DNA of 64,000 nt, from contig OZ038379.1 in assembly GCA_964036045.1 (NCBI GenBank), forward strand, positions 65,286,001 to 65,350,000. Direction: 5' to 3'. The translations under genes and the position numbers were made by a program. Origin of the DNA: Eutreptiella sp. 'Long Island Sound 2002'. Its lineage: Eukaryota > Protista > Euglenida. The stretch's first letter is position 1. Each line of letters opens with the position of its first letter. This document shows, piece after piece, positions 9,600 through 64,000 of this stretch. Under the pieces are notes generated by a model. It was given only the letters and a program-made list of their open reading frames with translations, was not told the DNA's origin and made no database searches.

Positions 9600-10030
9600 G
9601 CATTTGGACATCAAAAGTAGGGTGTAGAGTGCAGTGGGCAGAATGTGCAGGGTGAAGTGTGCAACATGTGCAGTGTATAGTGTGTAGTGTCTCGACTGCA
9701 CAATGTACGGTGTCCCAAATGCGCAATGCATAGTCAGCAGAGTGCATGGTGTACCGTGAATAGAAAATTCAACACATGTAATGTGCAGAGGTGCAGTGTG
9801 CGATGAGCAGTGTGTAGAACACACAATGTGCAATGTGCAGAGTGTGCTGTGTGCAAGGTGTGCGGTACATAGGGTATGCACCACACAAGGTGCCACGTGC
9901 GTCATCCACCACCGTGCACCGTGCGCAGCTTGTGCAATGTGCAATTTGCAGTGTGCAAAGTGTAGAGCGTGCAGTATGCACTAAGCATGTACAAGGTGTG
10001 TGGTGTGCAATGAGCAGAGTGTGTCGTGCA
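9600..10030. repeat. TGTGCA-rich low-complexity tract within a dispersed repeat
   Basis: Dense gtgcagtgtg/tgtgca motifs, flanked by related segments tatatgaag.ac.atcc..ca..gtttga at ~9075 and ~10055. Confidence 0.75.
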
Positions 10031-10942
10031 CCGCTAGCTTGGTCCCAATACTTGTTATATGAAGCACAATCCCACAAGGTTTGAACAAAAAGTTCAACAA
10101 TGGTGGCCAGCAATGGACACTGCCTGGTTCTAGATGGACCCAATGGCCCAAACTTGCATTTTCCCCCGTTTTGGGACGGAAGAGGCTTGTGGTGTGCACC
10201 AAGCACATTGAAACCAATCTGGAGAATGAAAAGGAGATTTTGTCTCATTTTTCACCAACCCCATTAGCACTTTCAGGTGTGTTTTCGTCTTGAAATGCCC
10301 CGAAAAGGACCAAATTTTCAGGATTTAACCGTTTTCGACTGCTTTGAAGGCCGTTTATTGCCTCTAGGGGCCTTATGGCGATGAACAATGATGAATCATT
10401 GTGTTTGCAAGCCTCTTTGCAAGCTGCACCAGAAAAGCACTTCAATGGGCTTCAATAGGCCGTTGGTATTTTGAAATGGCATACAGTACGCGTGCTTGGG
10501 CAGGGTTACCAGGGGTTACTCCAGGGGTGAAAAATGCGCTGTACTGATTGTTACTGAAGCACATTAGGGACCCCCTTAGGATGATAATTCTTGAACCTAT
10601 TTTTGGTCTACATAGGGGTAGGGTCAGCCACAGAGCTTGCCCTCCCTCAAGCCAGGTGATTGACAATCGATGGACCCTAATACATTGGGTGCAAAAGAGG
10701 CTTTGGTGCCTTCAGTAAATTACACCTCTTCACTGAGAATTAGAAATTTAGAGTGAGTTCTGTGTTAGCCAATGCAATTCGAATTCATAAATGTGGCTGG
10801 TGCCACAATTGCACCGGGTCTGAGGTGGTTAGCCTGCATTGGATGGAGCTGCTTCCTGTAAACTATGACAGAAATACACTGTGACAAAAATCGAGGTAGT
10901 GGCATACAAATGTGGAAGGGAATGTAATCAGGACATTCTCTG

Positions 10943-10943
<1 letters not shown>

Positions 10944-11015
<72 letters not shown>
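10944..11015. repeat. (GT)n microsatellite
   Basis: About 36 uninterrupted TG dinucleotides. Confidence 0.98.
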
Positions 11016-11017
<2 letters not shown>

Positions 11018-11536
11018 GGAGGGCGGGGGGCATGGGTCGATTTTCGGCCTCTAAAATGTGTGCACTTGATGCTGTATGAGGCCCAAACGATGTCTCCGCA
11101 GTGGATGGCCAACCTTTGCTGTCGCACTCTCACCTACCAAACCTGTTTCCCAGCCATCTGGGGACAAACAGTGTAAACAATTTCCTCTCCAGAAACAATA
11201 CGGTAATTGTGCACAACTGGAAGTACCAACCGGCATAATTACCTAGCCTTCATGGCAACCTGCGCTCTCACGCCCCTCTCCAGCACAGTCTCTGTCCCTC
11301 GCTGCCTCTATCCAGGCACTCTGTCCAAGCACACAGATGGCACTTTGTATGTGTGCAAAGCATGCCCCTGCATTTCTTAAAGCTCAAGCCGGTGCACGTT
11401 ACTTCGCATGAAGCATGACTCGCAGGCCTGCTCATCCAGATCAAGAGCAAAGGCAGCACGGTTGCAACACCGTTTGAGTCACTACGTATTTTCATGTTCC
11501 TTGTTTTATCTTATTTATTGCTCCAAATGTATCCAG

Positions 11537-11813
11537 TTGTGCACAGCGACCTTTGTGGACATGGTGCGGCCTTTCAACCAGGATAGGTTTGGTAGCAGTG
11601 TTCTTGTTTCTCAGATTCCTGAAGGCGAAGGCGAGGGGATTAGCCCCCGGCTGCATGTGAACCTTGAGGATGCCGAAAAGACGCACTGCAACGAGCCCCC
11701 ACCCCATGTTTTTCTGCCGTACACTAAGGTTAAGCAGCTTAAATTCATCCACGAAGCGAAAGGTATCGTTGTCACATTCAGCAGGGATTCTGTGCTGGAG
11801 GCATGGAGGCAAG
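11537..11813 (+). CDS. Candidate downstream exon of the host gene; domain not identified
   Basis: Flanked by atccag| (phase 0, compatible with the 8840 donor) and |gtagta. The open frame has globular-protein composition (LCTATFVDMVRPFNQDRFGSSVLVSQ...HVFLPYTKVKQLKFIHEAKGIVVTFSRDSVLEAWRQ) and is non-repetitive. Confidence 0.5.
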
Positions 11814-13985
11814 GTAGTATGATTTGCTGGATTGGATGTGGATATGGTTGGTGTATGGGTGGGTATGAATATTCGACCAGGCATGGGAATGGGGCTGGGG
11901 AAGGGGATATGTATTTGAATGTGGAAATCAATGGGAATGAGGCATCAAGGCTGTCCAAGGTCCAGTTGCGCAGTTCATGGAGGGGTGACACTCGGATGTC
12001 CTCGGAGTCCCCCATCCCAAACATGCCCCTCTCCTGGGGAAATCCACAGCCACTGTGTTGAGCCCAAAGGCATTCAGCCCCGCGGATGGGGACCCCCACC
12101 CACCAACCACTCCTTATGCACGGTATTGGGCCGGGGTGGCCGGATGTGAATGTGAGTGTGGATTTGGATCTGTGGATTCATGGATGCAGACGGATGGATG
12201 TGAACATGGGTGTGCATGTGGATATGGTTATGGGTGAGGTTGTGGATGGGGGTGTGCGGAAGGCGCTGGTACCAGACTGGCAATTGCTGGGATGGCGTAT
12301 CAATGGGAACTGATAGATGGAGCTTGGGCCCTGAAGTGAGCCTAACAACTAACCGTAAGCCATTTGGTTGTTGGCCAGGGAGTCCCTGCCTGCCCTTGGA
12401 AGTAAGCTGGCAGGGTCTGCTGCACCATTAGTCAAGGGCAGCGCGAGGCACCCCTGCCGCTTAGCCTGTTGGTGGATCTGCAGCTCACACAGTGCCTAGG
12501 CCATCGTCCTCTAGCCCCCACTTTGGCCTTTAGCAGGTTGGCCCTTGCCCTGGCATGCCCATGCTAGATGAGTGGGGACTGGCACATGACCTGGCGGATG
12601 TAGTGCTCCCCGGGCCCTCTGGTTGTGCCAGGTCTGTATTGGCCTGCTTTATGGCCGGAAGGCAGCCTGGCGGATCAAACGGACCCGGTCCACCAACAGC
12701 CCTTGGACGTGCGGCTTCTGGAGCAAGTGGTATGCCTAGGTGAAGCAGGCAATGGTTGGCCATCTCTAGCGCATTGCCACATAGCATGCATGTGGCATTG
12801 GGCATTGTGTGTTAGTTTGCAACCCGCTCTACTGCGCCCACCATGGTAGATTCTTCATGCTGTAGGTGGTGATATGCCGTTGTTGGTGTGTGTACAAGTA
12901 CCCCACAGGTCCCGAGTTGGTAGTTGACCCCAGCGGTTCTCATTGATCACATGTGAGGGGTAGCTGCATGTTCAACCAGCCACTTACAGAGTGCGTGTTG
13001 GCAGTGGTCGTGGTACAACTCCTCCAAGTCTACGGTGCATGAGCTCTTGAGTAGCTAGCTAAGGTCCACTTCCACGCCGTCCTTGGTTGTGTCAGCTTGC
13101 ACGTTAAAGTTTGTGATCCATAACGGGTTGGTTGCGATGATGATGGTTGGTTGTGCAGGGTTGGATGCTCTTTCCCCGCATGTTAGCATAAAGGAGGTGC
13201 ACACCATCGCCACAACGCCCTCCCTTTTGGTACGTTCACAAGGCCCTAGTGGCACCTCCAAGTGAGGAATGATCCCTCCTAGGTGGCAATTGACGCACAT
13301 GAGAGAGTAATATGAATACCTCCCCCTCCTAGAATATACCTACGTGCCACCTCTTAGGTAGGCTCCTACCCTTTTGTGACTTCACTACCATCATGCCGGC
13401 AATATGGGTGCAAATGTGCCCACAACATGTCTCCCCAAACAGTGTAGCCATGCTTATCCCCACCAAGCTTTTTGCACGAGTTAGGGAATGCTAACCCACA
13501 AATACATCCACAAGGCCTACAAATCACCAACGGTCAAATGCCACAAACACATCATATGCATGTCCCAGTGTGCACCTACCATTGGTGGGTTCCTTAAATC
13601 CACGGAGGCTGGGTCCTAGGCCAAGCTGTTGTCTCATCGTTGGTAAATGCCCTCTTAAAGTGGGTTTGCCAAGATTTGGAGGTCTAAGCTCTTTTTGGGG
13701 ATGCTTAGCAGCACTACAATGCGGCCTACTGGGGGGTTGCGAGGGGGAAGGGTCCCAATGACACTAGCCCTAGTAGAGCACCACTACATTTTCCAACCAT
13801 GATGCCCTGATTTCCTGTGCACCTACCAACTGGTCGTGGAGCATCTTGGTAGGCCCATATGGCTCCTAGGGGCCAAGGGTGCAAGCCCCCGTGATAGCTG
13901 TTAACCACACTCAATGCGCCCCGTACACTTTTTTACCTCTTGTTACATTGCCGCATACTCCTTTTCGGGCCTCTTTTTTCACAAG

Positions 13986-38896: not shown

Positions 38897-40735
38897 GCTC
38901 TACTATCCGCCCCCTTTCCACGGGCCCATTGTTTCAGTTTCTAGCAAACAAGGCTTTTTTGGAAAGGCCCGACCCGTAGCTCTCACCAGAACCTTATTTT
39001 AGGTCATTTGCTCTCACACACACAGAGATTTGGAGGGTCAAAAAGTGCTCTACTATCCGCCCCTTTCCAGGGCCCACTGTTTCAGTCTCTAGCAAACAAG
39101 GCTTTTTTGGAAAGCCCCGACCAGTAGCTCTCACCAGAACTTTATTTTAGGTCACTTGCTCCCTCCCACATAGAGATTTGGAGGCTCAAAAAGTGCTCTA
39201 CCCTCCCCCTTCTAGGGGCCCACTGTTTCAGTTTCTAGCAAACAAGGTTTTTTTGGCAAGCCCCGACCAGTAGCTCTCACCGGAACTTTACTTTAGGTCA
39301 TTTGCTCGCACACACACAGAGATTTGGAGGGTTGAAAAGTGCTCTACTATCCGCCCCCTTCCAGGGGCCCACTGTTTCAGCTTCTAGCAAACAAGGCTTG
39401 TTTGGCAAGCCCTGACCAGTAGCTCTCACTTGTACTTTATTTTAGGTCATTTGCTCACACCGACACAAAGATTTCAAGGCTCAAAAAGTTCTCTACCCTC
39501 CCCTTTCTAGGGGCCCGGTATTTGAGTTTCTAGCAAACAAGGCTTTTTTGGAAAGCCCCGACCATTAGCTCTCACCGGAACTTTATTTTAGGTCATTTGC
39601 TCTCACCCACACCGAGATTTGGAGGGTCGAAAAGTGTTCTACTCTCCGCCCCCTTCAAGGGGCCCACTATTTCAGTTTCTAGCATACAAGGCTTTTTTGG
39701 CAAGCCGTGACCAGTAGCTCTCACCAGAACTTTGTTTTAGGTCATTTGCTCACACCTACATAGAGATCTGGAGGCTTCAAAAGTGCTCTACCCTCCCCCT
39801 TTTTGGGGCCCACTGTTACAGTTTCTAGCAAACAAGGTTTTTTTGGAAAGCCCCGACCAGTAGCTCTCACGAGAACTTTATTTTACGTCATTTGCTCACA
39901 CCCAGAAAGAGATTTGGAGGCTTGAAAAGTGCTCTACTATCCGCTTCTTGTAGGGGCCCACCGTTTCAGTTCTTAGCAAACCAGGCTTTTCTGGAAAGCC
40001 CCGACCAGTAGCTCTCACCAGAACTTTACTTTAGTTCATTTGCTCTCACACACAAAGAAATGTGGAGGCTTGAAAAGTGCTCTACTATCCGTCCCCTTCT
40101 AGGGTCCCACTATTTCAGTTTCTAGCAAACAAGGCTTTTTTGGAAAGACCCGAGCAGTAGCTCTCACCGGAACTTTATTTTAGTTCATTTGCTCACACCC
40201 ACATAGAGATCTGGAGGCTTGAAAACTGCTCTACTATCCGCCCCCTTCCAGGGGCCCACTATTTCAGTTTCTAGCAAACAAGGCTTTTTTGGAAAGCCCC
40301 GACCAGTAGCTCTCACCAAAACTTTATTTTAGGTCATTTGCTCACACCCACAAAGAGATCTAGAGGCTTGGAAAGTGCTCTACTATCCGCCTCTTCCTCA
40401 TCAAGCATCTCGAGGGACGAGTCACTACTACTACTACTAATACGAGCTCTACTATCCGCCCCCTTACAGGGGCCCACTGTTTCAGTTCTTAGCAAACAAG
40501 GCTCTTTTGGAAAGCCCCGACCAGTAGCTCTCACCAGAACTTCATTTCAGGTCATTTGCTCACACCTACATAGAGATCCGGAGGCTCGAAAAGTGCTCTA
40601 CTATTCGCCCCCTTCCAGGGGCCCACTGTTACAATTTCTAGCAAACAAGGCTTTTTTGGAAAGCCCCGACCAGTAGCTCTCACCAGAACTTTATTTTAGT
40701 TCATTTGCTCGCACCCACTCAAAGATCTAGAGGCT
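38897..40735. repeat. ~148-150-bp satellite, ~12 copies
   Basis: The unit ctctactatccgccccttccaggggcccactgtttcagtttctagcaaacaaggcttttttggaaagccccgaccagtagctctcaccagaactttattttaggtcatttgctcacac...gagatttggaggct.gaaaagtg restarts about every 148-150 bp (38897, 39047, 39197 ... 40597). Confidence 0.97.
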
Positions 40736-47712: not shown

Positions 47713-48560
47713 TGTGTGTGGGGGGGGGGCGTTGTAAGCAGATGAAAGAGGGCAAAACGTCGTCACCTGAAAATGATAAAAATGCCCGGCAGGCACGTTA
47801 GGTCTGACGGATTGTGTATGTTGTAATTCGGGTAATTTTTTTTTGCGGTAAATGCGTGTAACAAAAAAATCATCTAGTTGTCTATTTTTTTTTTGCGGTA
47901 AGTTGTGTAAGCCGGCCGATGTGCCCACCTGTGGCCACGTATTGGCCGCTAGGCCTATGTAGCCCGTGCCATGTGCCCTCCGGGCGCCCCAAAATTGTTG
48001 TTGTGCAGGCTATTTAGTGGCACCTGCAAAAATTTTCACATTTCGACTTTTTCCGAAACCCTTCTGTTGCCCCTAGGTTGGGTTTGGGTGATCATTTGGT
48101 GACAATACGGGTACTTGAGCGCCCATGGGACACGTACTGGCCACTGGGCCCATCTAGCCCGAGCCATGGGCCCCCCAAAAGCTTCGAAATTGTTGTTTGT
48201 AGGTGGTTCAATGGCATTTGGTGTGTGCACAAACTGCTTAAGCAGTTTTCCACCCTCTACAGGTGAAAAATGGAAAATTTTGCAAAAAAATTTCGATATT
48301 GTGACCAGTCACAATGATGAAATATGCTGTGTAAAGCATGTTTTAGCCCCTCTTTATGTGTTTTTCACCCTATTTGGGTGTTGGGGGGGGGGGGGGGGGC
48401 TCCCAAGGGGTCTAGTGCACAACCTGCTTATGTAGTTTACCAGCCTCGGCAACTCAAAAATGGAAACTTCCAAAACTTGATTTTTTTTATTTTCTTACCA
48501 TCCAAAATGATCAAATATCCTATGTAAAGCATGTTTTAGCCCCTCTTCATGTGTTTTTCA

Positions 48561-49654
48561 GCCGGAGGCCCCCGCGGGCGCCACCCCGAAGCGTCCCGCT
48601 CGCGGTGCCACAGCTCAGCCGCCTGCCTGGCGCCGGCAGCGGCACACAGGGCGCGCTTTGCTTGGAACCTTGGGCGCTGTCTTGCGCCCGGTGCAGAAGC
48701 ATGGGCTCGGGCATCAGCCGTTGCTGCCGGGCGGGCCACAAAGGCCACACCGGCTCGTCGGCGGGCCCAAGGTGCCCGAGAGTCCTCCCGGATCGCGGCG
48801 GGACGCCAGGTGCCCGTCCCGGAGGCCCAACGCGCGGGAGCGGCCGCGTTGTTCTCCTGGCTCGGGCGGGCCCGCCCGGTTTCCCGGGCCCTCCCGAGCT
48901 CGAGCCCTCCGGCGACACGCCGGTGCACGGCGCCGCCCAGGACGCTGGGTACTCGCCCCTCCTCCACCTTGGGGCCCGACGACCCCAGGACCGCGAAACG
49001 CCAGGCGCCTAACCGGGCTAACCTGGAGGGCCCGGGGCGAGTGGGGCCACAGCTAACGGGCGGGCGGGGGTAGCAAATCCCTTCTCACCCCCGGCCAGCA
49101 CGGGGGGACGACAGCCCAGCGCCGGTCCCCGCGTCCGCCTCCGCCACCACGTGGGCCACGGGGGCACTGTCTGCACCGCGGGACCCCCCCCCCCCCCCAC
49201 GATCCCCCCCACCAGAGCGGCCCCCCTCATCGCTCCCTGATGTTTTCAGCCGCATTTCAGCGGCCCTAAGCAGCCGGGCGTTGCCGCGGCGGCGATCCGA
49301 CCCCGGGGTCGGCGGCGGCCTTGGCCGAAGGCCACCAGGTCAGTGGCGGACATGTTCCGCGCACGCCCTCCCCACACACACACAGCGGTTGACGCAGCCG
49401 GGGGGAGCTCCTCTGACCCAATGGCGGCCTCGAGCGCCTCCCCCCCCCCCCCCGGTCCACACTGCCGCAGCGGCGGCAGCACGGTAGGGCCGGCACGGCA
49501 GAGACCTAGTCCCCTCTGGCTCCTCCCTCTCACCCGCCGTGCGGACGCAGGCGGGGGGCTTGTAGGGGAGGCCACGGGCGCTTGAACTCGACTCGGCCCA
49601 CCTCTCCTCCCCTCTGCCTCTGTACATAGGCCAGCGGACGCTAATAGACGAATG
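48561..49654 (+). mobile_element. Heavily 5'-truncated copy (3' end only) of the same LINE family
   Basis: Encodes CLEPWALSCARCRSMGSGISRCCRAGHKGH, homologous to the C-terminal Cys/His cluster of both long copies, and shares the 3'-terminal cctctgtaca.aggc...aat sequence. Flanked by ccctcttcatgtgtttttca (48541-48560) and ccctctttatgtggttttca (49655-49674). Confidence 0.85.
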
Positions 49655-50054
49655 CCCTCTTTATGTGGTTTTCACCCTATTTGGGTGTTGGGGGGGGGGG
49701 GGCTCTCAAGGGGTTCAGGGCACAACCTGCTTATGTAGTTTACCAGCCTCGGCAGCTCGAAAATGGAAATTTCCGAAACTGATCCTTTTGATACTCTGAC
49801 AATCCAAAATGAGCAAATATCCTATGTAAAGCATGTTTTAGCCCCTCTTTATGTGTTTTTCACCCCATTTGGGTGTTCGGGGGGGGGGGGGGGGTCCCAA
49901 GGGGTCTAGGGCACAACCTGCTTATCCAGTTTACCACCCTCAGCAACTCAAAAAATGGAAATTTCCAAGACTGATTTTTTAATATTCTTACCATCCAAAA
50001 ATGATCAAATATCCTATGTGAAGCATGTTTTGGCCCCTCTTTATGTGTTTTTCA

Positions 50055-53000
50055 GCCCTCCCGTGCAGTTTTTGACAGTGGCAGGCCCAGTCTTGTCGGG
50101 CCGGCCCCCCTGTGGCGCTGCGAGAGGGTCCAGTCTTGCCAGGCCCACTCTTTCATTGCGCCGTCCCTCGCGCTCGGCGCACACTCCCTTTCCTGCCCCC
50201 CCCTGTGCGGGTGCCAGCCCCTCAACTGCAGCCGGGCCCAGTCTTGCCAGGCCCGGCATCTCTTGCCCCGTGCTCAGTGCACGCGCGCTGGCACGCGTGG
50301 CGGGCACGGCCTCCCTCCCCCCTGCCCAGGTCTGGCACCGGCGCCAGCACCACTAACCGGCCCGTTGTATGGGGGCCTAACCTCCTGTTTCCGGGGCGCG
50401 CCGGCCGGCCCGCCCGCGTGTTGGCTTCCGGCGACGGCACCGCCGACGCGAGCTGTCAGGGGCTGGCAGGGCACCCGCCCCCCCCCTCTTCTCTCCACAT
50501 CTGTTGCGGTCAGGGCGCGGTGCGCGCTCGCGCTGCAGCGTGCGCGGACGGGCGCGGCTGGTGCGGTGCGGCGACGTGCACCCCCATCCGGGGCCGCTGC
50601 GGGTGGCTGTTTCGAATGTCACTGCGCTGCGGCCCCACTGCCACACAGTCTTCGCATGGGAGGCTGATGTGGTGCTGCTTGGGGAAACCAGACTGACAGC
50701 CACAGGCCAGTCAGTCATGGCGCGTCTGGCCCGCAAAGCCGGCTGGCAGTCCTTCTGGGGCGCCCCATTGGAGTCGCGGGGCGGGGGCATTTGGGACTGC
50801 CCCCTCAGGCGGCACAGCGGTCCTCGTGCGACAGGGCCTGCCGGCGCGGCAGGTCATGCCGCCGGCGAAGGAGGGTGAGGACTCGCTGGCGACCGCCCTC
50901 TGGCACTCCACCAGGTGGTGGCACGTGCTGGTGGGCCTCGGCATGGGGGCGACGGTCCTCCATGCCCAAGCGGCGTACGGCGTGTCGGGCCAGCCGGCGC
51001 TGAATCGGGCCTTTTGGCAGCAGGCCCTGGACTATGCAGCGCGGCATGGGGCAGCGCCGCAACTGATCGGGGGGGACTTTAATTTCCCCCTCGATGACCT
51101 CCTGCAGGCGCCGCCCACGATGCAGGGGCTGCTGCTCACGCGGCGTCTGGTGGACGCCGACTCAGAGCTGGCCGCCACCGCGGGCCGCTCCCCCCTGTGT
51201 TCGTATGTTGGGGTGCGGGGAGGACGCCCCACCCGCATTGATGGGCTGTTGGTGGACACCCGCCTGGCAGCCCTGTTGCGCGGGTCAGAGGTGCTGCCGG
51301 CGTGCGGCATCCCGCACCGTCGCCCGGTGCGCTTCGACCTGCTCGCCCAGGGGGCGGTACAGAGTGTGGTCAAGCTCGTGCGCCTGCCCCGGGTGGTCAT
51401 TCCGCCCTTGCCAGAGGAGGAGCGAATTCCTCTGGTGCAGAGCCTGCTGGACCCCCTGGGGCCCCGGTGGCACGCGGAGCTGGCAGCCGGGGACGTGGAC
51501 CGCCTGTGGTCAACGTGGACCTGGGCGGCGGAGGAGACACTGCTGGCGCTCCCAGTCCCAGGGCTCCGGCCGGGCGCGGAGCTACCCGCGGCTCCCCCTA
51601 ATTACAAGAGGGGCAGGGGCACAGTGCGGCTGCTGAAGGGGGTGCGGCTGTGCCCCCGCCAGCGCCGCACAACGGGCGACCCGGTGGCCTGCCCAGAGGC
51701 ACGCTTGCAGGCAGTGCAGGGGTCACTGCGGACAGTTCTGGGCTGGCTGGAGCGCCCAGACCCGCGGCCGGGGGCGGCGCTGCGGCTGGTCATGGAGGCC
51801 TGGTACGCGCTGCAGCGGCGGCTGCAGCGCGTGCACGCGCTCGGGGACGAGTATGCGGCCCTGCAAGTGCCGGACCCGCCAGACCGGCTGCCTCCGGCGG
51901 CAGAGCTGCGTGGGCTGCGCACAGCCCTGCAGGGCCGCATCCGCACAGAGCGGCAGCGGGGGGACAAAGACCGCCTGCAGGCGTGGAGGGACTGGCTCGA
52001 TGAGGCCTGGTCCTCCAAGCAGGGCGCGGTCTATAAGTGGCTGAAGGGCGAAAGCTTCGCCCCGCCGGTAACCTTCCTGGTCCGGCCAGACGGCACGCCG
52101 ACGGCGAACCTGCGGGAGATGGACTCCCTGTTGCAGGATGCCTGGCGGCCCATCAACTGCAAGTATGCGGAAGCCGCGGAGCCGGACCCGGCAGAGTTTC
52201 TTCGCCGGTATGGGCGACACGTGAGGTGCATGCCCATGATCTCGGGGCCTCTGACCGGACGTCGGCTGCGGCGGGCCCTCATGCGGATGCATCCCTCCGC
52301 CCTGGGCCTGGATGGCTGGAGCCTCGAGGACCTGCGCGCGCTGCCGGACCAGCTCCTGGAGTGGCTGGCGGACCTCCTGCGGGAGGTGGAACGGCAAGGG
52401 CGGTGGCCGTTGCGCCTCGCCGAGGGCTACACGGCCCTCATCCCCAAGGAGGGCCCACCGGGGCCGCTGAACACGCGGCCCCTAACGGTCCTCCTCATGG
52501 TCTACCGCCTCTGGGCGGGGATCAGGTTGGAGGAGGCCATCCGCTGGCAAGAGGCCTGGGCGCACCCGTGTGCCTTTGGTTTCCGCCCGGCGCGGAGCGC
52601 CCTGGATGGCGCCACAGTGACCCAGGTTCTCCTGGAGCTGTGCCGCTTGAAGGGGTGGGCGGTGGCGGGGATGAGCATCGATTACGTCAAGTGTTTCGAT
52701 CTCATCCCCCAAGCCGTCGTCCTGGCCCTGGCGTTGGAGCTGGGCATGGACCCAGGGGTCGCAAGGGCCCTGGGGGCCATGGACAAGCAGCTCCGCCGGG
52801 CCTTCAAGGTGGCCGGGTGCTTGGGGGCGTGGTGGCGGGCCACCAACGGCATCCTGCAAGGCTGTCCCCTCTCCGTGATCCTGGTGAATGTCCTCACCAC
52901 GATCTGGAAGTGGGAGGTGGATGCCCTGCGGGAGCAGGTCTGCGTGGCCACAGCGACGCTGCCGCCGGCGCTAGTGGCGGCAGAGGCCGACAGTGAGTCG

Positions 53001-56000
53001 GACCAGGCGAGCCAACACAGCGACTCCGCGGAGGAGTCGAAGCTGCATCTGCGGCTGCAGGCGCAAGGCCCAGGGCTGGCGGCCTTGGGGGCGTCAGGCT
53101 ATGCCGACGACACACAGGCAGTGGCGCCAGGGACGGCAGCCCTCCAGCGGACCGCCCCCACGACGGAGGCGTGGCTCACCTTGACGGGGCAGGATGTCCG
53201 CGTGGACAAGTCCTGCTCCTGGTCGCAGGGGGAGGGGGGGGGCGCAGGCAGTGCTTTTACGCGGCCTCCCCATACCGGCAGCAGACTGCTTCCGCCAGCT
53301 GGGGGTGGACGTCGCAGTGGGCGGCGCCCGCAGCACGGGGCCGGTGCTCGCACGACGCTTGGAAGCCGGCCGCAGTGTGCTGCGGCGCCTCCCGCATCTC
53401 CCCACTTTTCAGCGGCGGGTGCACGCGGTCAGCACCCTGGTGACGCCGCTGTCGCTCCATGGGGTGGCCATCGCCCCTCGACGGACCGGGACCTGAAGGG
53501 CCTAGAGACCATGGTCCTGCAGGCGGTATGGGGGGCGACCAGGCTCTCCCGCGCCAAGGAAGTGGTCTTCGTGGTCCTGACGCAGGGCCACCGCATCTCC
53601 CCGGTGATGCACACCCGCTACGAGCGGGTGCTATGGATGACCCGGATTGCGCGCACCCCGGGGCCCGTGCAAGTCCTGGTGCAGGCCATCTGGGAGAGCG
53701 GCCTCCGACCCCCGACGAAAGGGCCCTTCGGGCGCGCCCTGCACGTGGTCCGCCTGCTGGGCTGGCAACCACTGGAGGGCTGGTGGTCATGGATTGTGCC
53801 GGGCCAGACGGAGCCGCTGCACTTGGTGCAGGAGCCCATGCGGCAGATCTAGCACAGGGTGCGGGACAGCCTGCGCTGTCATGCCATGCGCGGGCTGGAG
53901 GCCCGCCGCCCGGCGACTTATGGCGGACTGGGGGACGGGGTAGACGGGGAGGCCTGTCGCGCGGCACTCCGGGTAGCATCCACGGAGCTGTAGGCCTCGC
54001 TCCTTCGGGGCTTGTTGGCAGGGGCGCTGTGGACGGCGGCCCGCGTGCGCGGGCACAACATGCGGGCCACGTCGAGCTGCCCCGGCTGCGGCTCACAGCA
54101 CGAGGATGAGGCGCATGCACTCTGGGACTGCCCGTCGTGGGAGACCGCCAGAGCACGGTGGCGCGCATGGGTCTTGCAGGCGGCGGAGCGCCTGCAGCTG
54201 GGCCCACCGACGGGCTGGCCGGCATGCCTGCGGCGCGCGGGCCTGCTACCCTTGGCCCTGTCCGCGGGGGCGGACCACTGGCAGGTGGATGAATTCCTGT
54301 ACAGGCTGTACGGGATGTACCTCGCGGTGCTCGCGGCCAGATACGCCCACACCCGCTCGGGGGAGCAGGGGCAGGGCGAGGCCCTCTTCCCGCGGCGCCC
54401 GGCGCCGGGCGGCAAGGGGGGATACCCGTGGCAGGACCTGAGCGGTCCCCTGCCGCAGCTGCCGGCGGCACCGGCAATGCGACTCCGCCCAGGCGTCCCG
54501 CCGGGGCGGCCGTGGGAGCCGGCGTTCGCCCAGGACCTGGTCCGCTGGGCAGCGTCCCTCCGGTGGCAGGACGGCCCAGGGGACGTCATCTGGGCAGAGC
54601 TGGCCTTGGACTGCGAGACGTTCCTGGGCCGGGCCCTTCCGGCGTCCCCCCACCATCGGTTGCGGGGGATGCGCCTCCCGCTCGGCGAGCGCGCGCAAGT
54701 CCTGCGGCAGGCCGCGCGGCTGTTGCAGCGCCACATGGCGGCAGGGCGCTTCCTGCAGGGGGCTCCCAGTGACCACTCGTACCGCTCGGGGGCCGCCTGT
54801 GTGCGGGGCTGCGGGCGCGGCCGTTCTTCGCGGCTAGGGCGGACATGGCACTGCAGCTGCAAGGCTTGGCCCTGCATCTGCAGGAAGCGTGGCTGCAACG
54901 CCTGCGCACGCCAGCCCGCATCCGGCCGGGGGGGGCGACACGCTTCCTCATGACCTATTTCCCCCGCCCCCCGGGAGGGGGGCCAGCACTGCTCCCCTAC
55001 GCTCGCCGGCCGCGGCGGGAGCACGTCCCGGGGGTCGCCCGGGTGGAAGAGCAGCGCCCGCGGCGGCAGGGCGAGGGCAGAGGGTCGGTGGGGGCCCGGT
55101 GCGCGCAACATGGCTCGCCCTCGTGCCGCCGCTGCCTGCAGCTGGGCTGGGGAATCAGCCGGTGCTGCCGCGCGGGGCACGAGGGGCACACGGCGCCGGG
55201 GCAGGCGCCCCCCCAGCAGCGACGGGCACCAGGCCGGCAGGTGCTGGCACCGGCGGCCCGCCAGGCGGGGGCAAGCGCGCTCTCGGCATGGATGGGGCGG
55301 GCCAGACCGGCGTCCGCAGCGCTGCCGGCGCCAGAGAGGCCCTCGCAGCGCGCCCGGAGGTTGGAACCGCGGCGGCTGGCCCGGCAGGCGCCCTCGCCTG
55401 ACCGCGACGTGGTGCCCGCGTCCCGACGTGCGCGCAGAGCGAGCCCGCCGCGCCCGGCGTTGACAGATGACCCCCCCCCCTCCTTCCCCACAGGGGACAG
55501 CCGCACTGGGGCTGCAGGATGTTTTCTGCGGCATTTCAGCTGCCCTGCTGGCACAGGGGGGCAGGCGACCCCGCCCCCATTGCGGACCCGAACCCCCCCC
55601 CCTCCCCACAGGGCAGGCAGGGCAGGCAGGTCAGGCAGGGCCGGGTGCAGGGGCACAGGGAACGGCGAACGGTGCACAGCACCAGGGAGCATCACCAGCA
55701 CAGCGTGCAGCGCACAGCGCACAACACCACGACAGTGCACATGCCCTGCCAGCACAGAGCACGGCACACAGTACACCACAGGATGCAGCACACAGTGCAC
55801 CACAGGGTGCATCGCACAGTGCACCACAGGATGTAGCGCACAGAGCACCACAGGATGCAGCACGCAGCACAGCGCACAGTGCAGCACACAGTGCAGCACA
55901 CAGCACAGCACGCAGTGCAGCGCACAGCACAGCGAATACAGCACGCAGTGCACCACCGGATGTAGCACACAGCACAGCGCACAGTGCAAGCGCAACACAC

Positions 56001-56464
56001 AGTGCGGCACACAGTACAGCACACAGCGCAGCACACAGTGCAGCACACAGCGCAACACACAGTGCGGCACACAGTGCAGCGCACAGCACAGCACACAGTG
56101 CAGCACACAGTGCAGCACGCGCGGCACGCCATGCGCAGGGCCCAGGACGACCGGGGCCCCTGCGCCAGGCCACACTATTCTCCATGGGGCTGCCAGTGCG
56201 GCAGCCCCCGCCGACGCATCGCCCCCCTGGGGCGCTTGACGCCGTAGCGCCGGCGTCCCCTGGGGGAATGTCCATGCCTAACCTGGCGCACGGGAGGGCG
56301 AGCTCGGAAGAGACATAGTCTTGACCGACTCGTCCCTCTGTTCCGCCGTGCACCACAGGCGGGGGGCAATCAGCCCGGGGGAAGGCGCAGAACTCAGAGA
56401 TCGGCCCTTTCCCCCCAGCCCCTCGACCTCTGTACACAGGCTCATGGACAGTAAAAGCGCAATA
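50055..56464 (+). mobile_element. APE-type non-LTR retrotransposon (LINE), 5'-truncated and inactivated; ORF2 = APE endonuclease - RT - CCHC zinc finger - long C-terminal extension
   Basis: APE motifs (VSNVT, LLGETR, LIGGDFN, PTRIDG, PHRRPV) at ~50600-51350. RT motifs SALGLDGW, LIPKEG..NTRPLTV, FGFRP, SIDYVKCFD, GILQGCPLS and GYADD at ~52270-53110. Zinc finger CPGCGSQHEDEAHALWDC at ~54077. Frameshifts near 50800 and 53240, stops at 53850 and 53990. Bounded by the direct repeat ccctctttatgtgtttttca (50035-50054, 56465-56484). Confidence 0.93.
55670..56120. repeat. GCACA/CAGCACACAGTG low-complexity minisatellite inside the LINE 3' region
   Basis: Dozens of cagcacacagtg-like units, absent from the homologous region of the truncated copy (49250-49650). 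Confidence 0.9.
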
Positions 56465-56599
56465 CCCTCTTTATGTGTTTTTCACCCTGTTTGGGTGTGT
56501 TGGGGTGAGGGGGGGCTCCTAAGGGGGCCGGGGCACAACTTCCTTATGCAGCTTTCGAGGCTTGGCAGCTCAAAAATGGAAATCTTTATGTGTTTTTCA

Positions 56600-59500
56600 T
56601 GCCGACCTTCGTCGGCTCCACATTGGAGCCTTTGGGAAGGACCACGCGTGGCGGCACCTGAGGCCGCTCATGGGGGCAGTCCTGCCCCACCCCCCGCCCA
56701 TGTAGGCCGCGGTCCGGGGTTCGATGGTCGAGGTCTTCACCGACCTCCCCTCGTCCGTGGCCCCGCTGGTGATGCGCGCCAGCGGCAAGGCCCGGGGGGT
56801 GCACTTCCGGCCCTGGATCGTCACGGGCGCGGCCTTCCAACACCCCGCGTACGTGCTGTGGTTCAAGCAGCCACCGGAGCGGTGCGGGCCCTCCCCGGAG
56901 GCCTGGAAGACCCTCGCCGAGGACGGGGAGCTCCTCTCCATGTTCGCGGGGCTGGTGGACGGGGGCGCCCCCGGCAACGTGGGGGTCCGCGTCTGGGGAG
57001 CCAAGCCGGTGGACCCCAAGGTGGTGGCGCACATCGCCAACCTGCTGGGTGCCCCGGCCCCAGCGAAGACCACGTCCGTGCGTGTCCGGGGCTACCCCGC
57101 GCAACTGGGCCTGGCGGTGGACGAATATGCGCAGCTCCGGCGCTACGCCCAGGAGGCGTTCCGGCTAGAGGTGCCCATCCGCGTCCACCGCTGCACCCAG
57201 CTGGCCCACAGCACCCTCGACCGCCAGGTCTTGGACCTGGAGCTGGAGGGGGTGCCTGAGGACTGGCAGGGGGTGCGACTGGGTGCGCCCGACACCCGCC
57301 TCCCAGACCGGACCTGGGAGCGGACCACCCGCAGCTCCCGTCACGGACGCTACCAGCCTCTGGGGCCCAGGGCCCGGATGACACGCCCGCAAGGACCTGA
57401 CGTCGCGCAGCAGCAACTTGCGGACGCCCAAGACGCACCGGACCACACGGGGGACCTGGCCATGGCCAATGCGGAGCCGGCCGTTGTCGACGTCGATGAG
57501 GAGGACGAGGACATTCTTTGATGTTCTTGGTCCTCCTCTTCCTGACCCTCCTGCACGCGGTGGACTGCCCTGGATGGCAGCCCGGAACGGGGGCCATAAC
57601 CCACGGGGGGTGGACGGAGCGACCCCGAGCTCCGGCCTCCTGCCGGACGCACCCGGTGACAACGGCGGTGGCGACAGCGGCGGTACCAGCCCCGGCGCCC
57701 CCCCCCCCAGGGGAGGCACCAGGGACCGGATCCCCGAGCCGGCCGGAGTGTGTCTACACATCCACAGCCCACGAGGGTGCCCCGGCGCGAGGCGATGGCC
57801 CTGGGTCCTCTTTGGGGGAGGGGTGCAGCCCGGGCAGTGGCGAGGGTCCCCACACGGCAGTGGGGGGTTGGCAGTACAACAGGTACAACAGGGGGCACAG
57901 CCGCCGCGGCACTGCGGCTCCCCCTCTCACCGGGTGCGGCCGGCGTGGCGGCCGGCGGACTCCCCCTCCCCCCCGCCCCCCCCCCCGAGGGAAATGGAGC
58001 CTGGGGGGCAGCCCGGGAACGAGCACAGCCTGTCGGGGGGCCGACAGCTGCGGGGGGCCCGCTAGCTCCCGACACCGAGGGGTCCTTGCCCCAACTTGCG
58101 GACCCCGGAGCGCACAGCGGCCGTGCAGCGAACCGAGACCCCCTGCAAGCAAGGGGCGGCCTACCCGCCGCAACTGACCAGAGCCAGCGAACGCGCCATG
58201 GCGGGGGGGGCGGCAGCGGACTAGATCGCTTCGGTGCCCTGCTGGACACGCCCGGCGCGGGTGGTGGTGGGCACGGCGCTGGTACCAGCCCCAGCAACCC
58301 CCCCCCTGGTGTGGCCCCAGTGTCCGGACCCCCGACCGGGCTGGAGGGTGTCTATACGCCCACAGCCCACGAGGGCGCCCCAGGGCCAGGTGATGGCACT
58401 GGGTCCCCCCCGGGGGCGGAGGCCGGCCCGGGCTGTGGCACGGGGCCCCACGCTACAGTGGGTGGTAGGCGGTACAACACGGGGCGCAGCCGCCGCGGCA
58501 CTGCGGCTCCCCCTAGCGCCGGGCGTGGCCAGGACGGTGGCCGGGGCACCCCCCCTCCCCCCACCCGCCCCTCCCCCTCCCCCTCCTCCCAGCCCCCCCC
58601 CCCCCCCCGCAGGGGCGGCGGAAGCCAAGGGACCCGGCGGGCAACACGCGCTACCTACCCATGGAGCCAGGGGGGCGGCCTTGCGCGGGCGCCAGCGCCT
58701 GCCCTTCCGCGCGCCCGCGGCGGCACGCCGCTCCCCCCGGCGCCGCCCCCTCCGCCGCCCGGCGCGCCCGCCCTCGGATCGGGACCGGGGCCGACAGCCT
58801 GACCCTGGCGTAGCGGGACCTGAGCCGACGGCTACCCTACAGGCATGCCTCGCTGCGCCACTGACCTCCCGCCCTGCACCCTAAGACCGGCGATGGGCAG
58901 ACCTCTGCGGGGGGTGGGGGCTGACTCCCTTCCCCCCCACCGGCTCAGGCTCCCGCACAGGGACGCCCCCCCCCCCCTCCGGTGCTGGGCCTTCCCCCCC
59001 CCTCCTTTTCTTAAGGTGCCGGGACGTCGAGCCCCACCCACGCCCCATGCGCGTCGCGCTGGCGAACGTCACGTCCCTGCGCCTGCATTGGCACACGGTC
59101 GCTGACTGGCGGGCGGACGTGGTGCTGATCACGGAGACCCGCCTAACGGCGGTGGCGCAGCGGGTGATGCGCGCGCAAGCCGGGGCGTCGGGCTGGCAAG
59201 CGTTTTGGGGGGCGCCCTTGGAGTCCCGTGGGGGGGGCATCTGGGATGCGCCGGCAGGGGGGGTGGGGATCCTGGTGCGCCAAGGCATCCCAGCCAAGCA
59301 ACTACTCCCCCCCAAGGGGGCGCCCCGCACCGAGTCGGACGCCTTGGCCCAGACACTCTTGCACTGCACCCGCTGGTGCCACGTCGTGGTTGGATTGGGC
59401 CGGGGGGCGGATACCCTGCACGCCCAGGTGGCGTACGGCGTTTCGGCCCAGCCGGCCCTCAACCGCACCTTCTGGGACCCCGCCACCCGGTATGTGGCGC

Positions 59501-62500
59501 GGCACGGGATGGCCCCGCAGCTGGTGGGGGGGGACTTCAACTTCGACCTGAATTACCCACTTCGGGTGCCACCGTCTATCCTTGCGTCCCTCCTGACACG
59601 CCGGCTGGCGGATGCGGACCTCGGGCTGGCGACCGCCTTGGGGAGGGACCCCCTGTGCTCGTACCGTGGCCCGCAGGGAACGCGACCCTCGCGCATTGAC
59701 GGCCTGCTGGTGGACACGCGCCTGGCGCCGCTCCATGCGGCGGAACGGCTCCCACAGGGGGTGATCTCGGGGCACACCCCGGTGTGTTTTTACGTCCAGC
59801 TGAAGGGGGCGTCGCAGCGGGTGGTCAAGTTCTTCCGCCCCAAGCCGCTGGTGCCGGCCCAGCGAAAGGAGCAGGAACGGCTCCTTCTTGTGCAACGCCT
59901 GCTCGACCCGATGGAGGCGGGGTGGCAAGCGGCTTTGGCTACCGGGGACATGGACCACGACCGCGGAGGAGACTCTCCTCGCCCTGGCCTGCCCGGATAT
60001 CACTCCGGACACCCTCCTGGCCGGGGCCACCCTTCCGCTGGCCCCTCCACACCTCCCCCCCGGCAGGGGCACGGACCAACTGCTTCGGGAGGTGCCCCTC
60101 TGCCCCCAGCAGCGGCGCGACACGGGAGGGCCCCTGACCTGCCCGGTGGCACGCGTCGAGGCGGCCCAGGGACCCCTCCGGGAGGTCCTGCGCTGGTTGG
60201 GGCGCCCAGCGCAGGGGCCGGGCGTCCTGCCGCGAGCGGTGCAGCAGGCGTGGACGGCCCTGCGGCGCCGCCTGGGCAGACTCCGCGAGCTCGGCCCGGA
60301 GTATGCGGACTTTGAGCCGGGGGGCGCGCTCGACAGGCTGGCCCCGCTTGCCTCCCTCCGCCGCCTAAGCGCAGCGCTGCCGGGCAGGGTCCGGGCGACG
60401 CTCCGGGCAGAGGACAAGGACCGCGTCCGGGAGTGGCGCGAATGGCTCGAGGAGTCCTGGTCTTGGGATCAAGGGGCCGTGTATCGCTGGCTCAAGGACG
60501 AGTCCTACGCCCCCCCGGCCACCTTCCTCACCAGGCCGGATGGCACGGCCACGGCCAGCCTAGCGGAGATGGATGGCCTCCTGCACGACGGCTGGCGCCC
60601 CATCAACCGCAAGTATGCGATGGACCCAAAGCCGGACCCGTGGGCCTTCCTGCGCCGATACGGCCACCACGTACGGCAAGTCCCTATGCTTGCCTCGCAG
60701 CTCGATGGCCCCCGCCTGCGCAAGGGACTCTCCCGCATGAAGCCCTCGGCGTTGGGGCTGGACGGATGGAGTCTGGCGGACCTCCGCTCCCTCCCCGACA
60801 AGCTGTTGGGCTGGTTGGCTGACCTCCTGCGGTAGGTGGAGCGGAGGGGGAAATGGCCCGCCCGCCTGCCCGAGGGCTACACCGCCCTCATCCACAAGGA
60901 GGGGCCGCCGGGGCCCCTGAACACCCACCCGCTCACCGTCCTGTCCATGGTCTACCGGCTGTGGGCGGGGGTGCGCCTGGTGGACGCCATTGCGTGGCAA
61001 GAGGCATGGGCCCACCCGGCGGCCTTTGGATTCCACCCGGCCAGGAGCGCCCTGGACGGGGCGGCGGTAACGCGGGTCCTCTTGGAACTGTGTCGCCTCC
61101 GGGGCTGGGCCGTCGCAGGGATGAGCATCGATTACGTCAAGTGTTTCGATCTCATCCCCCAGGCGGTCGTGCTGGCCCTGGCGTTGGAGCTGGGCATGGA
61201 CCCGGGCACGTGCCGTGCCCTGGGGGCCATGTACAAGCAGCTCCGCCGGGCCTTCAAGGTCGCGGGGGCCCTCGGCCTCTGGTGGCAGGCCACCAACGGC
61301 ATCCTCCAGGGGTGCCCACTGTCGGTGATCCCGGTGAATGTACTCACCACGATCTGGAAGTGGGAGGTTGACTCCCTGCGCCGTCAGGTGTGAGCACAAA
61401 CGGCCGCCGTCCCTCCGACTCAGGACGGACGCAGCGGATGACCTGAAACCAGGGGCCCTGCCCCCCCTCAAGGACGCCGGCCCCGGCTACGCCGCACTAG
61501 GGTCGTCGGGCTACGCGGGCGACACCCAACCGCGCTCCAGGACACGGTCCCCGCGACGGAAGAGTGGTTGCGGGTCACGGGGCAGGACGTCCGCGTGGAC
61601 AAGTCCTGCTCCTGGGTCCAGGGAGAGCGAGGCGCCCCGGCACTGCTGCTCTGGGGGGTCCCCATCCCGCTGGCGACACCTTTCCGCCAGCTCCGCGTCA
61701 ACGCCGCCATTGGGGGCTCCAAGGCCACGGGGCAGGTGCTGTCCCGGCGCCTGGAGGCGAGACGGAGCGCCCTGCGCCGCCTGCCCCATCTCTCGACGTA
61801 TGACCGGCGGGAGCGGGCCATCAGCACCCTGGTCAACCCGCTGGCCTTCCATGGGGTGGCGGTGGCGTCGGTGACGGATCCCGACCTGCGGGGGTTCGAA
61901 ACCGCGGTGGTGCGGGTCCCGGGCCAAGGAGGTCATATTCACCGTGCTGTCCAAGGGGCAGCGCATGTCCCCGGTCATGCAAACACGGTATGAGCACATC
62001 CTCTGGCTGGCCCGCCTAGCCCGCCTGCCAGGGGTCACGCAGGTCTTCGCTCAGGCTATCTGGGAGTCGGGGGGCCGCCCACCCGGGACGGGCTCGGTGG
62101 GGCGCGCGCTCCGCACGGCAGCCTCCCTGGGCTGGACCCAGCACGAGCGCTGGTGGTGCTGGGACGTCCCGGGGAAGGACCACCCCCCTGCACTTCGTGC
62201 AGGAGCCGCTCCGCCAGCTCCAGCACCCGGTCCGGGACAGCCTACGTTGCCACTCCGCGCGCCAGCTGGAGGCGCGGCGCGCCGTCACCTTCAGGGGGCT
62301 GGGCGACGGGGCGGATGGCTCGACCTGCCGCGCGGCGCTGCGGGCGGCCTCCACGGAGTTGGAGAAGTCGCTGCTGCGCGGGCTCCTGGCCTGAGCCATT
62401 TGGACAGTGGCCCGGGTCTTGGGCCACGGCCTCCGCGCCAACGCCGCGTGCCCGCGCTGCGGCGCGGCGCACGAGGACGAGGCCCACGTCCTGTGGGACT

Positions 62501-64000
62501 GCCCGGAATGGAGCGACGCCAGGAGGATGTGGCTCCCGTGGCTGCACGACGCGGCGGGGGCTATCTTTGGCCTGGGCCCGTCAGACCGGTGGCCCTCCTG
62601 CCTTCGCAAGGCGGGACTTTTCCCCCTCCGGCCGGCGCAGGGGGTGGACCGGGACCTCCTCGACGATTTTTTGTACCGCCTGTACTGCATGTATTTGGCT
62701 GTCCTCGCGGCCCGGATGGCGGCCGGCGCGGGGGATCAGCCGGGCCACGGCGACTCCCTCCTCCCGGAGCAGCCGCGTCCGCGGCCCCGCAACCCTTACC
62801 CCTGGGATGCCTTCGTTGGCCCCATCCCGGGGGATGCCGTCCGCCACCAGCCGCGGCTGCAGCCGGGGGTGCCGCCGGACTGGAGCTTGCCACGGGACTT
62901 CATCCACGACCTCGTCCGGTGGGCCCCGGCGCTGGCCTGGGATCCGGGGCCGGCGGAGGTCTCCTGGGCCGAGCTGGCTCTGGACTATGAGGCCTTCGTG
63001 GGGCGGGCTCTCCCGGCCTCTCCGGACCACCGGCTGCGGGGCACTCGCCTGCCGCTCGAAGAGCGGGCGCAAGTCCTGCGCAAGGCGGTGGGGCTGGCGG
63101 AACGCCAACTGGCGGCGGGCGTGCTACTGACCGGGGCCCCGCTGGGGCGCTGTCGCTCGCTCTTCCCCCGGGGGGGGCGCGTGTGCGCGGGACTCTCAGC
63201 GCGACCGAACTTCGCGGCGCGCCACGTGGTCATGTTGCAGCTCATGCGCCTGGCGGCGCACTGCAGCAACTAGTGGGCCAGGCGCTTGCGGGCGCCGGCG
63301 CGCATGCGGCCGCAGCATAGTGACCGCTTTCTCATGGATTACTTCCCCCGCCCCCCTGAGGGGGGGCCTTCCCTGCTGCCTTACGCCCGGCGGCCCCCTC
63401 AGGCCCCGGCCCGCAGCGTCCCCCTCGCGGCGCCGCAACGCAGCCGCCCCCCAGGAGCGGGCAGCGGCACGCAGGGCGCGATCTGCTTGGAGCACGGGGC
63501 GCCGTCGTGTCCCCGCTGCAGGAGCTTGGGCTGGGGCATCAGCCGCTGCTGCCGGGCTGGCCACGTAGGCCACACGGGCCCCTCGGGGGGCTCGAGCTGC
63601 CCCGTGGCCCCTCCCCGGGTCGCGCCGGGCCGCCGGGTGCTCGTTCCCGAGGCCCGACGAGCGGGGGCGGCGGCCTTGTCCTCCTTGCTGGGGCGAGCCC
63701 GCCCAGCATCACAAGCCCTCCCCGACGCGGGCCCCACGGCGGCACGCCGGCGTGCGGCCCCGCCCAGGGTGCTAGGCACGCGCCCTCTCCCAGCTCTGGG
63801 GCTGGACGCCTCCAGGCCCGCAAACCGTGAGACGCCTTACCGGGCTAATCGGGGGGTCCCAGGGGGGATTTCGCACCGAGAATCGGGTGGGGGTGCCACA
63901 GACCCCCTCTCACCCCAGCCATCGGGGGGGGGAAACAGCCCGAGGCCGGCCCCGCCGGCTCTCTCCGCCTTCACGGAGGACGTGGGGGCGCCGCCGGGTG
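56600..64000 (+). mobile_element. Second, diverged copy of the same LINE group with an ORF1 remnant (~56600-57520) and disrupted ORF2 (59047-~63600); runs off the window end
   Basis: ORF2 aligns motif by motif with the 50055 copy (LANVT, LITETR, LVGGDFN, PSRIDG, SGHTPV, SALGLDGW, SIDYVKCFD, GILQGCPLS, GYAGD, CPRCGAAHEDEAHVLWDC). It has in-frame stops (e.g. 60833, 61391) and frameshifts. The upstream 265-aa ORF has an RRM-like 'SVRVRGYP' segment typical of LINE ORF1. Confidence 0.92.

Follow-up and report, generated by a model that had tools for sequence, protein, structure and literature searches.

We describe a family of long interspersed nuclear elements (LINEs) in the euglenid Eutreptiella sp. 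'Long Island Sound 2002', three copies of which lie in a 64,000-nt stretch of contig OZ038379.1 (assembly GCA_964036045.1, positions 65,286,001 to 65,350,000 of the forward strand; this whole stretch is hereafter referred to as the window). The family belongs among retrotransposons of the non-LTR type (those lacking long terminal repeats) with an apurinic/apyrimidinic endonuclease-like (APE) domain and comprises at least three lineages, which are designated as A, B and C. We conclude, with a probability of roughly nine in ten, that it integrates through TPRT (target-primed reverse transcription) at one fixed site of a host repeat unit of ~190 bp. Coordinates are window positions 1-64000, and L-numbers denote loci fetched from the ENA assembly ERZ25074135.

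The repeat that carries the target is a satellite with a period of ~188-192 bp, of which ~4.5 units are found in the window, between 47.9 and 64 kb. Three GC-rich inserts interrupt this array (~70% GC vs ~50% for the remaining window). They are LINE copies on the + strand, designated as c1, c2 and c3, and all three begin directly 3' of the satellite 20-mer CCCTCTTTATGTGTTTTTCA. The features of this region are as follows, with open reading frames abbreviated as ORFs, untranslated region as UTR, reverse transcriptase as RT and target-site duplication as TSD.

47935-48226, no strand assigned: conserved leader of a dispersed composite repeat in which the target units lie, recognized by homology to other loci
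48227-48560, + strand: satellite, a partial unit and one unit, with an empty site at 48348-48367
48541-48560, + strand: left TSD of c1, CCCTCTTCATGTGTTTTTCA
48561-49654, + strand: LINE copy c1, lineage C, 1094 bp, 5'-truncated, consisting of the end of ORF2 and the 3' UTR, without poly(A)
49655-50054, + strand: two satellite units, with an empty site at 49843-49862
49655-49674, + strand: right TSD of c1, CCCTCTTTATGTGGTTTTCA
50035-50054, + strand: left TSD of c2, CCCTCTTTATGTGTTTTTCA
50055-56464, + strand: LINE copy c2, lineage B, 6410 bp, 5'-truncated within the inter-ORF repeat region
50573-50596, + strand: 2A-like GDVHPHPGP of c2, directly before the APE
~50600-51320, + strand: APE of c2 (Pfam Exo_endo_phos), with a frameshift near 50780
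~52040-53150, + strand: RT of c2 (Pfam RVT_1)
~54009-54131, + strand: CCHC motif of c2 (Pfam zf-RVT)
55750-56118, + strand: 12-nt repeat array of c2, a degenerate tandem of GCACACAGTGCA
56265-56464, + strand: conserved 3' tail of c2
56465-56599, + strand: satellite remnant between c2 and c3, made up of the right TSD of c2, ~100 nt of a unit, a 76-bp deletion and the last 16 nt of the target
56465-56484, + strand: right TSD of c2, a 20-mer identical to the left copy
56584-56599, + strand: target remnant left of c3, CTTTATGTGTTTTTCA, the final 16 nt of the target
56600-64000, + strand: LINE copy c3, lineage A, 5'-truncated, running past the window end

An earlier reading of this DNA from its letters alone (the sequence-only reading) had placed the junctions of the three copies at these positions, and all of them are present in the sequence. 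The duplicated 20-mer that it had described after both complete insertions is found at 49655-49674, where it differs from the left copy at 2 of 20 positions, and at 56465-56484. The units that it had called empty, at 48348 and 49843, are indeed uninterrupted and run directly into CCCTATTTGGG. Its ~190-bp satellite stands with regard to the period, although the picture must be refined: the window holds just ~4.5 units, and the unit left of c3 has an internal deletion of 76 bp.

The three copies differ markedly from one another. The short copy c1 aligns with the 3' region of c3 at 75% identity and with positions 9297-9854 of the L006 element at 76%, and its tail resembles the lineage A tail. c2 is 96-98% identical to other lineage B copies. 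The truncation point of c3 corresponds to position 1594 of the 9854-bp L006 element, to which c3 is 87% identical; its APE is detected by Pfam from ~59008 and its RT at ~60470-61580. That the two long copies are diverged in sequence and 5' structure, as had been proposed, agrees with their nucleotide identity of 67-69% and their truncation at different points. All three copies are dead: c2 has in-frame stops (frame map and tblastn with the protein P0182), c3 has several stops and frameshifts, and the stops or frameshifts extend to c1.

When we searched with the c2 ORF protein, the relatives among the matches listed were found solely on contigs of the ENA assembly, from which twelve loci were fetched. 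On all loci we mapped the 20-mer together with each lineage's last 150 nt. In the window and these loci, the LINE 3' ends of all three lineages adjoin the same base of the 20-mer in the identical orientation (13 of 13). After L003 and L011 are taken as one locus, the overlapping L001/L002 are counted once and c3, whose 3' end lies beyond the window, is added, these copies represent ~12 independent events: seven in lineage B, four in lineage A and one in lineage C. About nine of these events come from eleven loci outside the window. The same junctions recur at L001/L002, L003, L004, L005, L006, L008, L009 and L010. In every recovered copy, the 3' end is joined to the C that starts CCCTCTTTATGTGTTTTTCA, or that starts CCGTATTTAYGTGTTTTTCA in a second satellite variant, which harbors two lineage A copies (L004 and L005). 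The 5' ends, full-length or truncated, are joined after the final A of the 20-mer, except in L005. The 3' end thus meets the first C of the 20-mer and the 5' end follows its final A, and the 20-mer is therefore duplicated. The TSDs are perfect, 20-21 bp in length, in 7 of 9 complete insertions. By our own estimate, insertions placed at random on either strand of a 190-bp unit would agree in this way with a chance of ~(1/380)^11, and the shared site is beyond chance. The proposal that the family is specialized on the satellite is supported by the wider sample, in which lineages A, B and C use the site in every copy recovered.

Individual sites carry private sequence variants that are repeated on both sides of the insertion. 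L009 has the TSD variant CCCTTGTT... on both sides, L010 has a 21-nt variant CCCTCTTTTACG... on both sides, and the L001/L002 tandem has the variant TTTGTGTG on all three of its site copies. Given that these variants are private and flank the elements on both sides, the duplication was made at each insertion. The L001/L002 tandem, in the order LINE, 20-mer, LINE, 20-mer, satellite, arose when a second element struck one of the two site copies left by the first insertion.

The shared junctions could also have been inherited from a single ancestral insertion that was spread by segmental duplication, unequal crossing-over or gene conversion. One pair of loci behaves in this way: L003 and L011 share one truncated copy, their left flanks are 99.8% identical, and they represent one event (a haplotig or a recent duplication). 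The target arrays at different loci are, in addition, paralogous. However, lineage B alone exhibits five different 5' structures, namely a start at position 1 (in three copies, of which one has an extra A), at 2924, inside the inter-ORF repeats (c2) or at 3500, and a 5' inversion (L008), while the same base is used by three lineages that are 25-33% apart. Lineage B copies are 96-99% identical to one another, whereas their flanks are 80-90% alike; the reconstructed empty sites of the same loci are 84-89% identical and alignable for ~0.4-0.8 kb left and ~0.3 kb right of the site. Since the LINEs are far more alike than the flanks, they are much younger than the host repeats. The private TSD variants on both sides of single insertions likewise speak against inheritance. 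Taken together, segmental duplication is contradicted for all but the L003/L011 pair, and as a general account it is extremely improbable. That the window copies are independent events and not one duplication, as the sequence-only reading held, is supported by their different subfamilies and 5' ends, by the excess of LINE over flank similarity and by the private TSD variants on both sides.

The 5' inversion in L008 (7202-10052) comprises the first 2854 nt of a full-length lineage B element, with canonical junctions and a perfect TSD. Such an inversion is the signature of twin priming, which explains 5' inversions in mammalian L1. The elements thus display TSDs, variable 5' truncation, a constant 3' end and one 5' inversion, which are hallmarks of TPRT.

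It might also be supposed that these LINEs insert roughly at random and that only harmless copies in the repeat survive, in which case the pattern would reflect retention bias rather than targeting. Repeats are a classical refuge for transposable elements, and our sample is small. Retention, however, cannot yield the same nucleotide, the same orientation and a 20-bp TSD in ~12 events, and young copies (98-99% alike, with open ORFs) likewise all lie at the site. We therefore give this explanation almost no weight and retain site-specific integration.

Public sequence data were consistent with these junctions. In Logan contigs from four public runs, examined over 56130-56640, the depth of the 20-mer core far exceeds that of the LINE tail. 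Among the junction forms listed, none was unexpected: to the left of 56464/56465 lies either satellite or a LINE tail of the A/C type, and to the right of 56484/56485 either satellite or other sequence, one of which is like the lineage A 5' end; as contigs, these data show the presence of junction forms and are not a census. Separately, in several metagenome runs from estuaries and seawater, Logan contigs contain 14-42% of the sampled 31-mers from window 56120-56600 (LINE tail and satellite), and these samples seem to include the organism or close relatives.

The nature of the target repeat differs in part from what had been proposed. The site lies in a satellite unit in every copy, as expected of a host satellite target, but most insertions are outside long classical arrays and the second variant is also used. 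Most are found in short arrays of one to four units within a dispersed composite repeat of ~1 kb, which consists of the conserved leader, the one to four units and a last unit cut at ~position 110-160. The composite repeat with CCCTCTTT-variant units is found in the window (47935-48226 plus the array), L001, L003, L008, L009 and L010, and is 84-89% alike between loci. The leader at 47935-48226 shows 85-90% homology with the stretch on the left side of the arrays in L001, L003, L008 and L010, and the homology among loci ends further left of it. Of the second variant (CCGTATTTAYGTGTTTTTCA), long arrays exist, and these are hit as well. The composite repeat may itself be a mobile, satellite-carrying element. 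Because snoRNA arrays occur in this genome, we also considered an RNA gene array as the identity of the satellite and rejected it, as Rfam gave no match on the satellite or on the whole window.

Within the unit, the target is not more conserved than the rest, as judged from per-position conservation in 50 empty units. The two nick positions deduced from the TSDs lie in an imperfect direct repeat with a spacing of 20 bp, GTTTTAGC^CCCTCTTT and GTTTTTCA^CCCTATTT, which are alike at 12-13 of 19 positions; only 0.17% of the position/offset pairs in the unit match as well. The motif common to both sites is GTTTTnnnCCCTnTTT (48340-48378 and 49835-49873 in the window). This direct repeat may be a tandem pair of protein-binding half-sites.

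We propose the following course of integration. The element endonuclease, perhaps together with another DNA-binding part of ORF2 or ORF1, would nick the bottom strand opposite ...AGC^CCCT, and reverse transcription would be primed at the exact 3' end of the RNA, recognized through its 3' UTR. Given that the elements lack poly(A) and have a conserved 3' end of ~190 nt, the RT probably recognizes the 3' UTR of its own RNA. Satellite sequence in read-through RNA may pair with the nicked target, which would fix the exact start of the cDNA. The top strand would be nicked 20 bp downstream, at ...TTTCA^CCCT. A candidate 52-nt ribozyme (nt 1-52) similar to that of hepatitis delta virus (HDV) and devoid of P4, described below, probably cuts the full-length RNA from a co-transcript. 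The nicks predicted by the sequence-only reading, on the bottom strand at the start of CCCTCTTT and on the top strand after TTTTCA, fit the 20-bp TSDs.

Targeting might instead depend mainly on RNA-DNA homology, with read-through transcripts bearing satellite sequence annealing to nicks or breaks in any unit and priming there. The element has no poly(A), and the satellite always lies downstream of it, so that read-through RNA would carry the target. The Fujiwara laboratory has reportedly observed that initiation in R1-type elements gains precision when downstream target sequence anneals. Annealing at the 3' end, however, cannot set the top-strand break, which is also fixed (a 20-bp TSD and the same 5' junction in truncated copies), and insertions also occur in the variant unit, which differs at 3-4 of 20 positions. 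Furthermore, in R1, TRAS1 and Tx1L, sequence specificity resides in the APE-type endonuclease itself, and the R1Bm endonuclease cuts both strands (PMC1919474). RNA homology as the main determinant is hence improbable, and we favor an endonuclease that selects the site.

The coding content of the family was characterized on full-length references for lineage B (9158 bp, L002:6066-15223) and lineage A (9854 bp, L006:4336-14189). ORF2 holds an N-terminal APE-like domain (PF03372) followed by an RT (PF00078), the order that defines an APE-type LINE, and a CCHC motif, all by Pfam. Lineages A, B and C are diverged, and ORF2 of B is 60-61% identical to that of A at the amino acid level. An AlphaFold 2 model of P0182:140-1240 (predicted local distance difference test score 84) aligns over ~1050 residues with the ORF2 proteins of L1, Tx1, jockey and R1. 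Neither P0002 nor the c2 ORFs gave an RNase H match at E<=0.05. The last letters of the elements are ...AATA or ...AATG, and a run of A or poly(A) is absent. The 3' ~190 nt is conserved across A, B and C although the lineages are otherwise 67% identical; an RNAalifold analysis of the 3' ends gave conserved blocks with no more than 4 covarying pairs, which is too weak for a claim of structure. Lineage B copies outside the window have open ORF1s of 812-821 aa and open ORF2s of 1885-2067 aa. Since some copies keep both ORFs open, lineage B is probably still active.

Other features of these proteins and loci are recorded here in their own right. The 2A/StopGo-like GDVHPHPGP is also found in P0182 (residues 151-159), with HPGP in place of the canonical NPGP. 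In intact lineage B copies, the ORF2 frame is open through the 12-nt array of the 3' region, with AHSAAHS-like repeats almost to the element end. L007 contains only a fragment of another relative. At L011:7880-14500, an internal A-like LINE fragment (8727-11836, 88-94% identical to other A copies) lies in unrelated sequence of lower GC content; a separately called RNase H gene (12736-12990) downstream of the fragment belongs to something else, and the region is probably a nest of other elements.

A candidate ribozyme occupies nt 1-52 of the full-length elements (L010:6649-6700 and L006:4336-4387; also L002:6066, L009:7109 and, on the minus strand, L008:10052). In silico, this 5' segment of both A and B can adopt the nested double pseudoknot characteristic of HDV-like ribozymes, starting at nucleotide 1. 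The candidate pairing consists of P1 (1-6/29-34, with a G1.U34 wobble), P2 (9-14/47-52), P3 (16-18/26-28) and P1.1 (20-36 and 21-35), with an L3 of 7 nt, CUGA in J4/2 just before P2' (its C being position 42 in B and 41 in A) and no P4. In A and B together, 32 of 34 cells are paired, vs 10-21 when the 3' partners are slid. In seven of the 17 pairs, both partners have changed between A and B with pairing retained, and the first 35 nt share only 18 positions. Position +1 and the covariation make an HDV-like ribozyme at the 5' end a candidate. Release of the RNA by such a ribozyme would account for the common start of full-length copies, at the same G next to the target. HDV-like ribozymes at the 5' end free element RNA from co-transcripts in R2 (PMC3774820) and L1Tc/ingi (PMC3185411, PMC4035085).

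Several observations weigh against the reading offered here, for integration or for the ribozyme. The 5' junction of L005 is irregular, lying ~95 bp further into the unit. Our sample consists of copies reached through ORF2-like proteins of one assembly and thus favors copies with ORF2 over short or ORF-less ones. The search for RNA runs containing the element found none. Regarding the ribozyme, the HDV models of Rfam gave no match on full-length elements, nor, even at E<=10, on their 5' 240-280 nt; the candidate has no P4, and these covariance models do not represent pseudoknots. A home-made loose HDV descriptor gave 16 hits on all loci vs 11-18 in shuffles and is not specific on its own.

We examined the relatives of the family by sequence and by fold. 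A phmmer scan of 1.8 billion representatives returned 303 proteins at E<=1e-30, among which the only named near relatives were transcripts of the diplonemid Rhynchopus; these fit a euglenozoan host. A profile search for named relatives gave nothing but unnamed proteins, apart from two tick proteins whose names are automatic, and the protein atlas gave generic RT/APE clusters only. In the PDB, L1 ORF2p was the only match by sequence and also the match by fold, with the P0182 model. In an RT tree of the available relatives, A and B are sisters, followed by the L007 fragment, the P0184 family and an unnamed Logan protein. The P0184 family (50% amino acid identity, 126 sequences in the cluster; L012:10001-16177) lies outside the 190-bp satellite and was seen as a single copy. 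Upstream of the L012 element are 1.2 kb of arrayed (CGCA)n as well as (CA)n, and downstream of it is (AC)n.

Among reviewed proteins, a set that held no Ingi/L1Tc proteins, the best Foldseek match was Xenopus Tx1 ORF2 (P14381; E 5.6e-35, 16% identity), followed by L1 ORF2 (1e-32 to 1e-30), jockey/X/BS (1e-29 to 1e-28), R1 (1e-27 to 1e-25, 9th-10th) and R2. This ranking of folds, which is not a phylogeny, hints at an L1/Tx1 affinity. Membership in the Ingi/L1Tc clade was considered and rejected, with no RNase H detected and no poly(A).

Among known systems, Tx1L of Xenopus laevis, from the Tx1 branch of the L1 group, is likewise a LINE with APE, RT and CCHC that uses a specific site inside a dispersed repeat, the Tx1D transposon (its target specificity is stated in PMC1919474). 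In contrast, the identity to Tx1 is 16%, L1, jockey and R1 score nearly as well, and the euglenid family has a protist host, no poly(A), a candidate 5' ribozyme and a 2A-like motif. The R1 clade (R1 in 28S rDNA; TRAS1 and SART1 in Bombyx telomeric repeats) shares the use of one exact position of a tandem host repeat, fixed TSDs and head-to-tail pile-ups at the same site. The TSD of R1 is 14 bp, however, compared with 20 bp here, the present target is a non-genic ~190-bp repeat, and R1 ranks below Tx1, L1 and jockey by fold. R2 and L1Tc/ingi have the HDV-like ribozyme at the 5' end, which in the euglenid family is a candidate only. L1Tc also lives in Euglenozoa and has a 2A peptide before its APE, which the 2A-like motif before the APE of the euglenid family recalls. 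R2 differs in its restriction-like endonuclease and single ORF, and L1Tc/ingi differ in having RNase H and poly(A), neither of which was detected in the euglenid family, and in not being strictly site-specific.

A full-text literature search found no description of this family, nor of any site-specific LINE in Euglena, in line with the earlier suggestion that it is possibly undescribed. The paper on the chromosome-level genome of Euglena gracilis says no more of LINEs than that they make up 1.5% of it. Systems of this kind are well known from R1, TRAS/SART and Tx1L and, for ribozyme processing, from R2 and L1Tc, while the family itself was not found in the literature.

Elsewhere in the window, a separate 149-bp satellite (38897-40735; ~12 units, 85% identity) is unrelated to the LINE target. 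Short interstitial telomere-like heptamer runs, (CCCTAAC)6 and AACCCTAGCCCT x2, are found at 3373-3414 and 2186-2211.

A broader interpretation, which we put forward tentatively and hold to be somewhat less probable than its negation, is that these elements constitute an undescribed euglenozoan lineage of site-specific APE-type LINEs. This lineage would combine R1/Tx1-like targeting with a 20-bp stagger, a minimal P4-less ribozyme like those of R2 and L1Tc and a 2A-like peptide; it would have kept its target through the split of lineages with 60-61% identical ORF2, and the repeat would be a dispersed mobile composite, possibly spread by the LINEs. If so, the target retained across the A/B split implies a long co-evolution with the host repeat.

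Site-specific LINEs are the best natural models of target choice and are being made into tools for safe gene insertion, with R2 as the current example. To our knowledge, nearly all known site-specific cases of the APE type come from animals, and a probably active euglenid family would broaden this animal-based picture. Its points of interest are the protist host, a repeat-unit target within a dispersed composite, a site of at least 20 bp with many natural empty and filled copies, two diverged lineages on one target, the candidate minimal ribozyme, the 20-bp TSD and the probable current activity. For the annotation of this very repeat-rich genome, it matters that repeat arrays and LINE pile-ups are easily mistaken for segmental duplications. 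The family offers a compact system for asking which part of the APE endonuclease or the ORF2 protein reads the DNA sequence.

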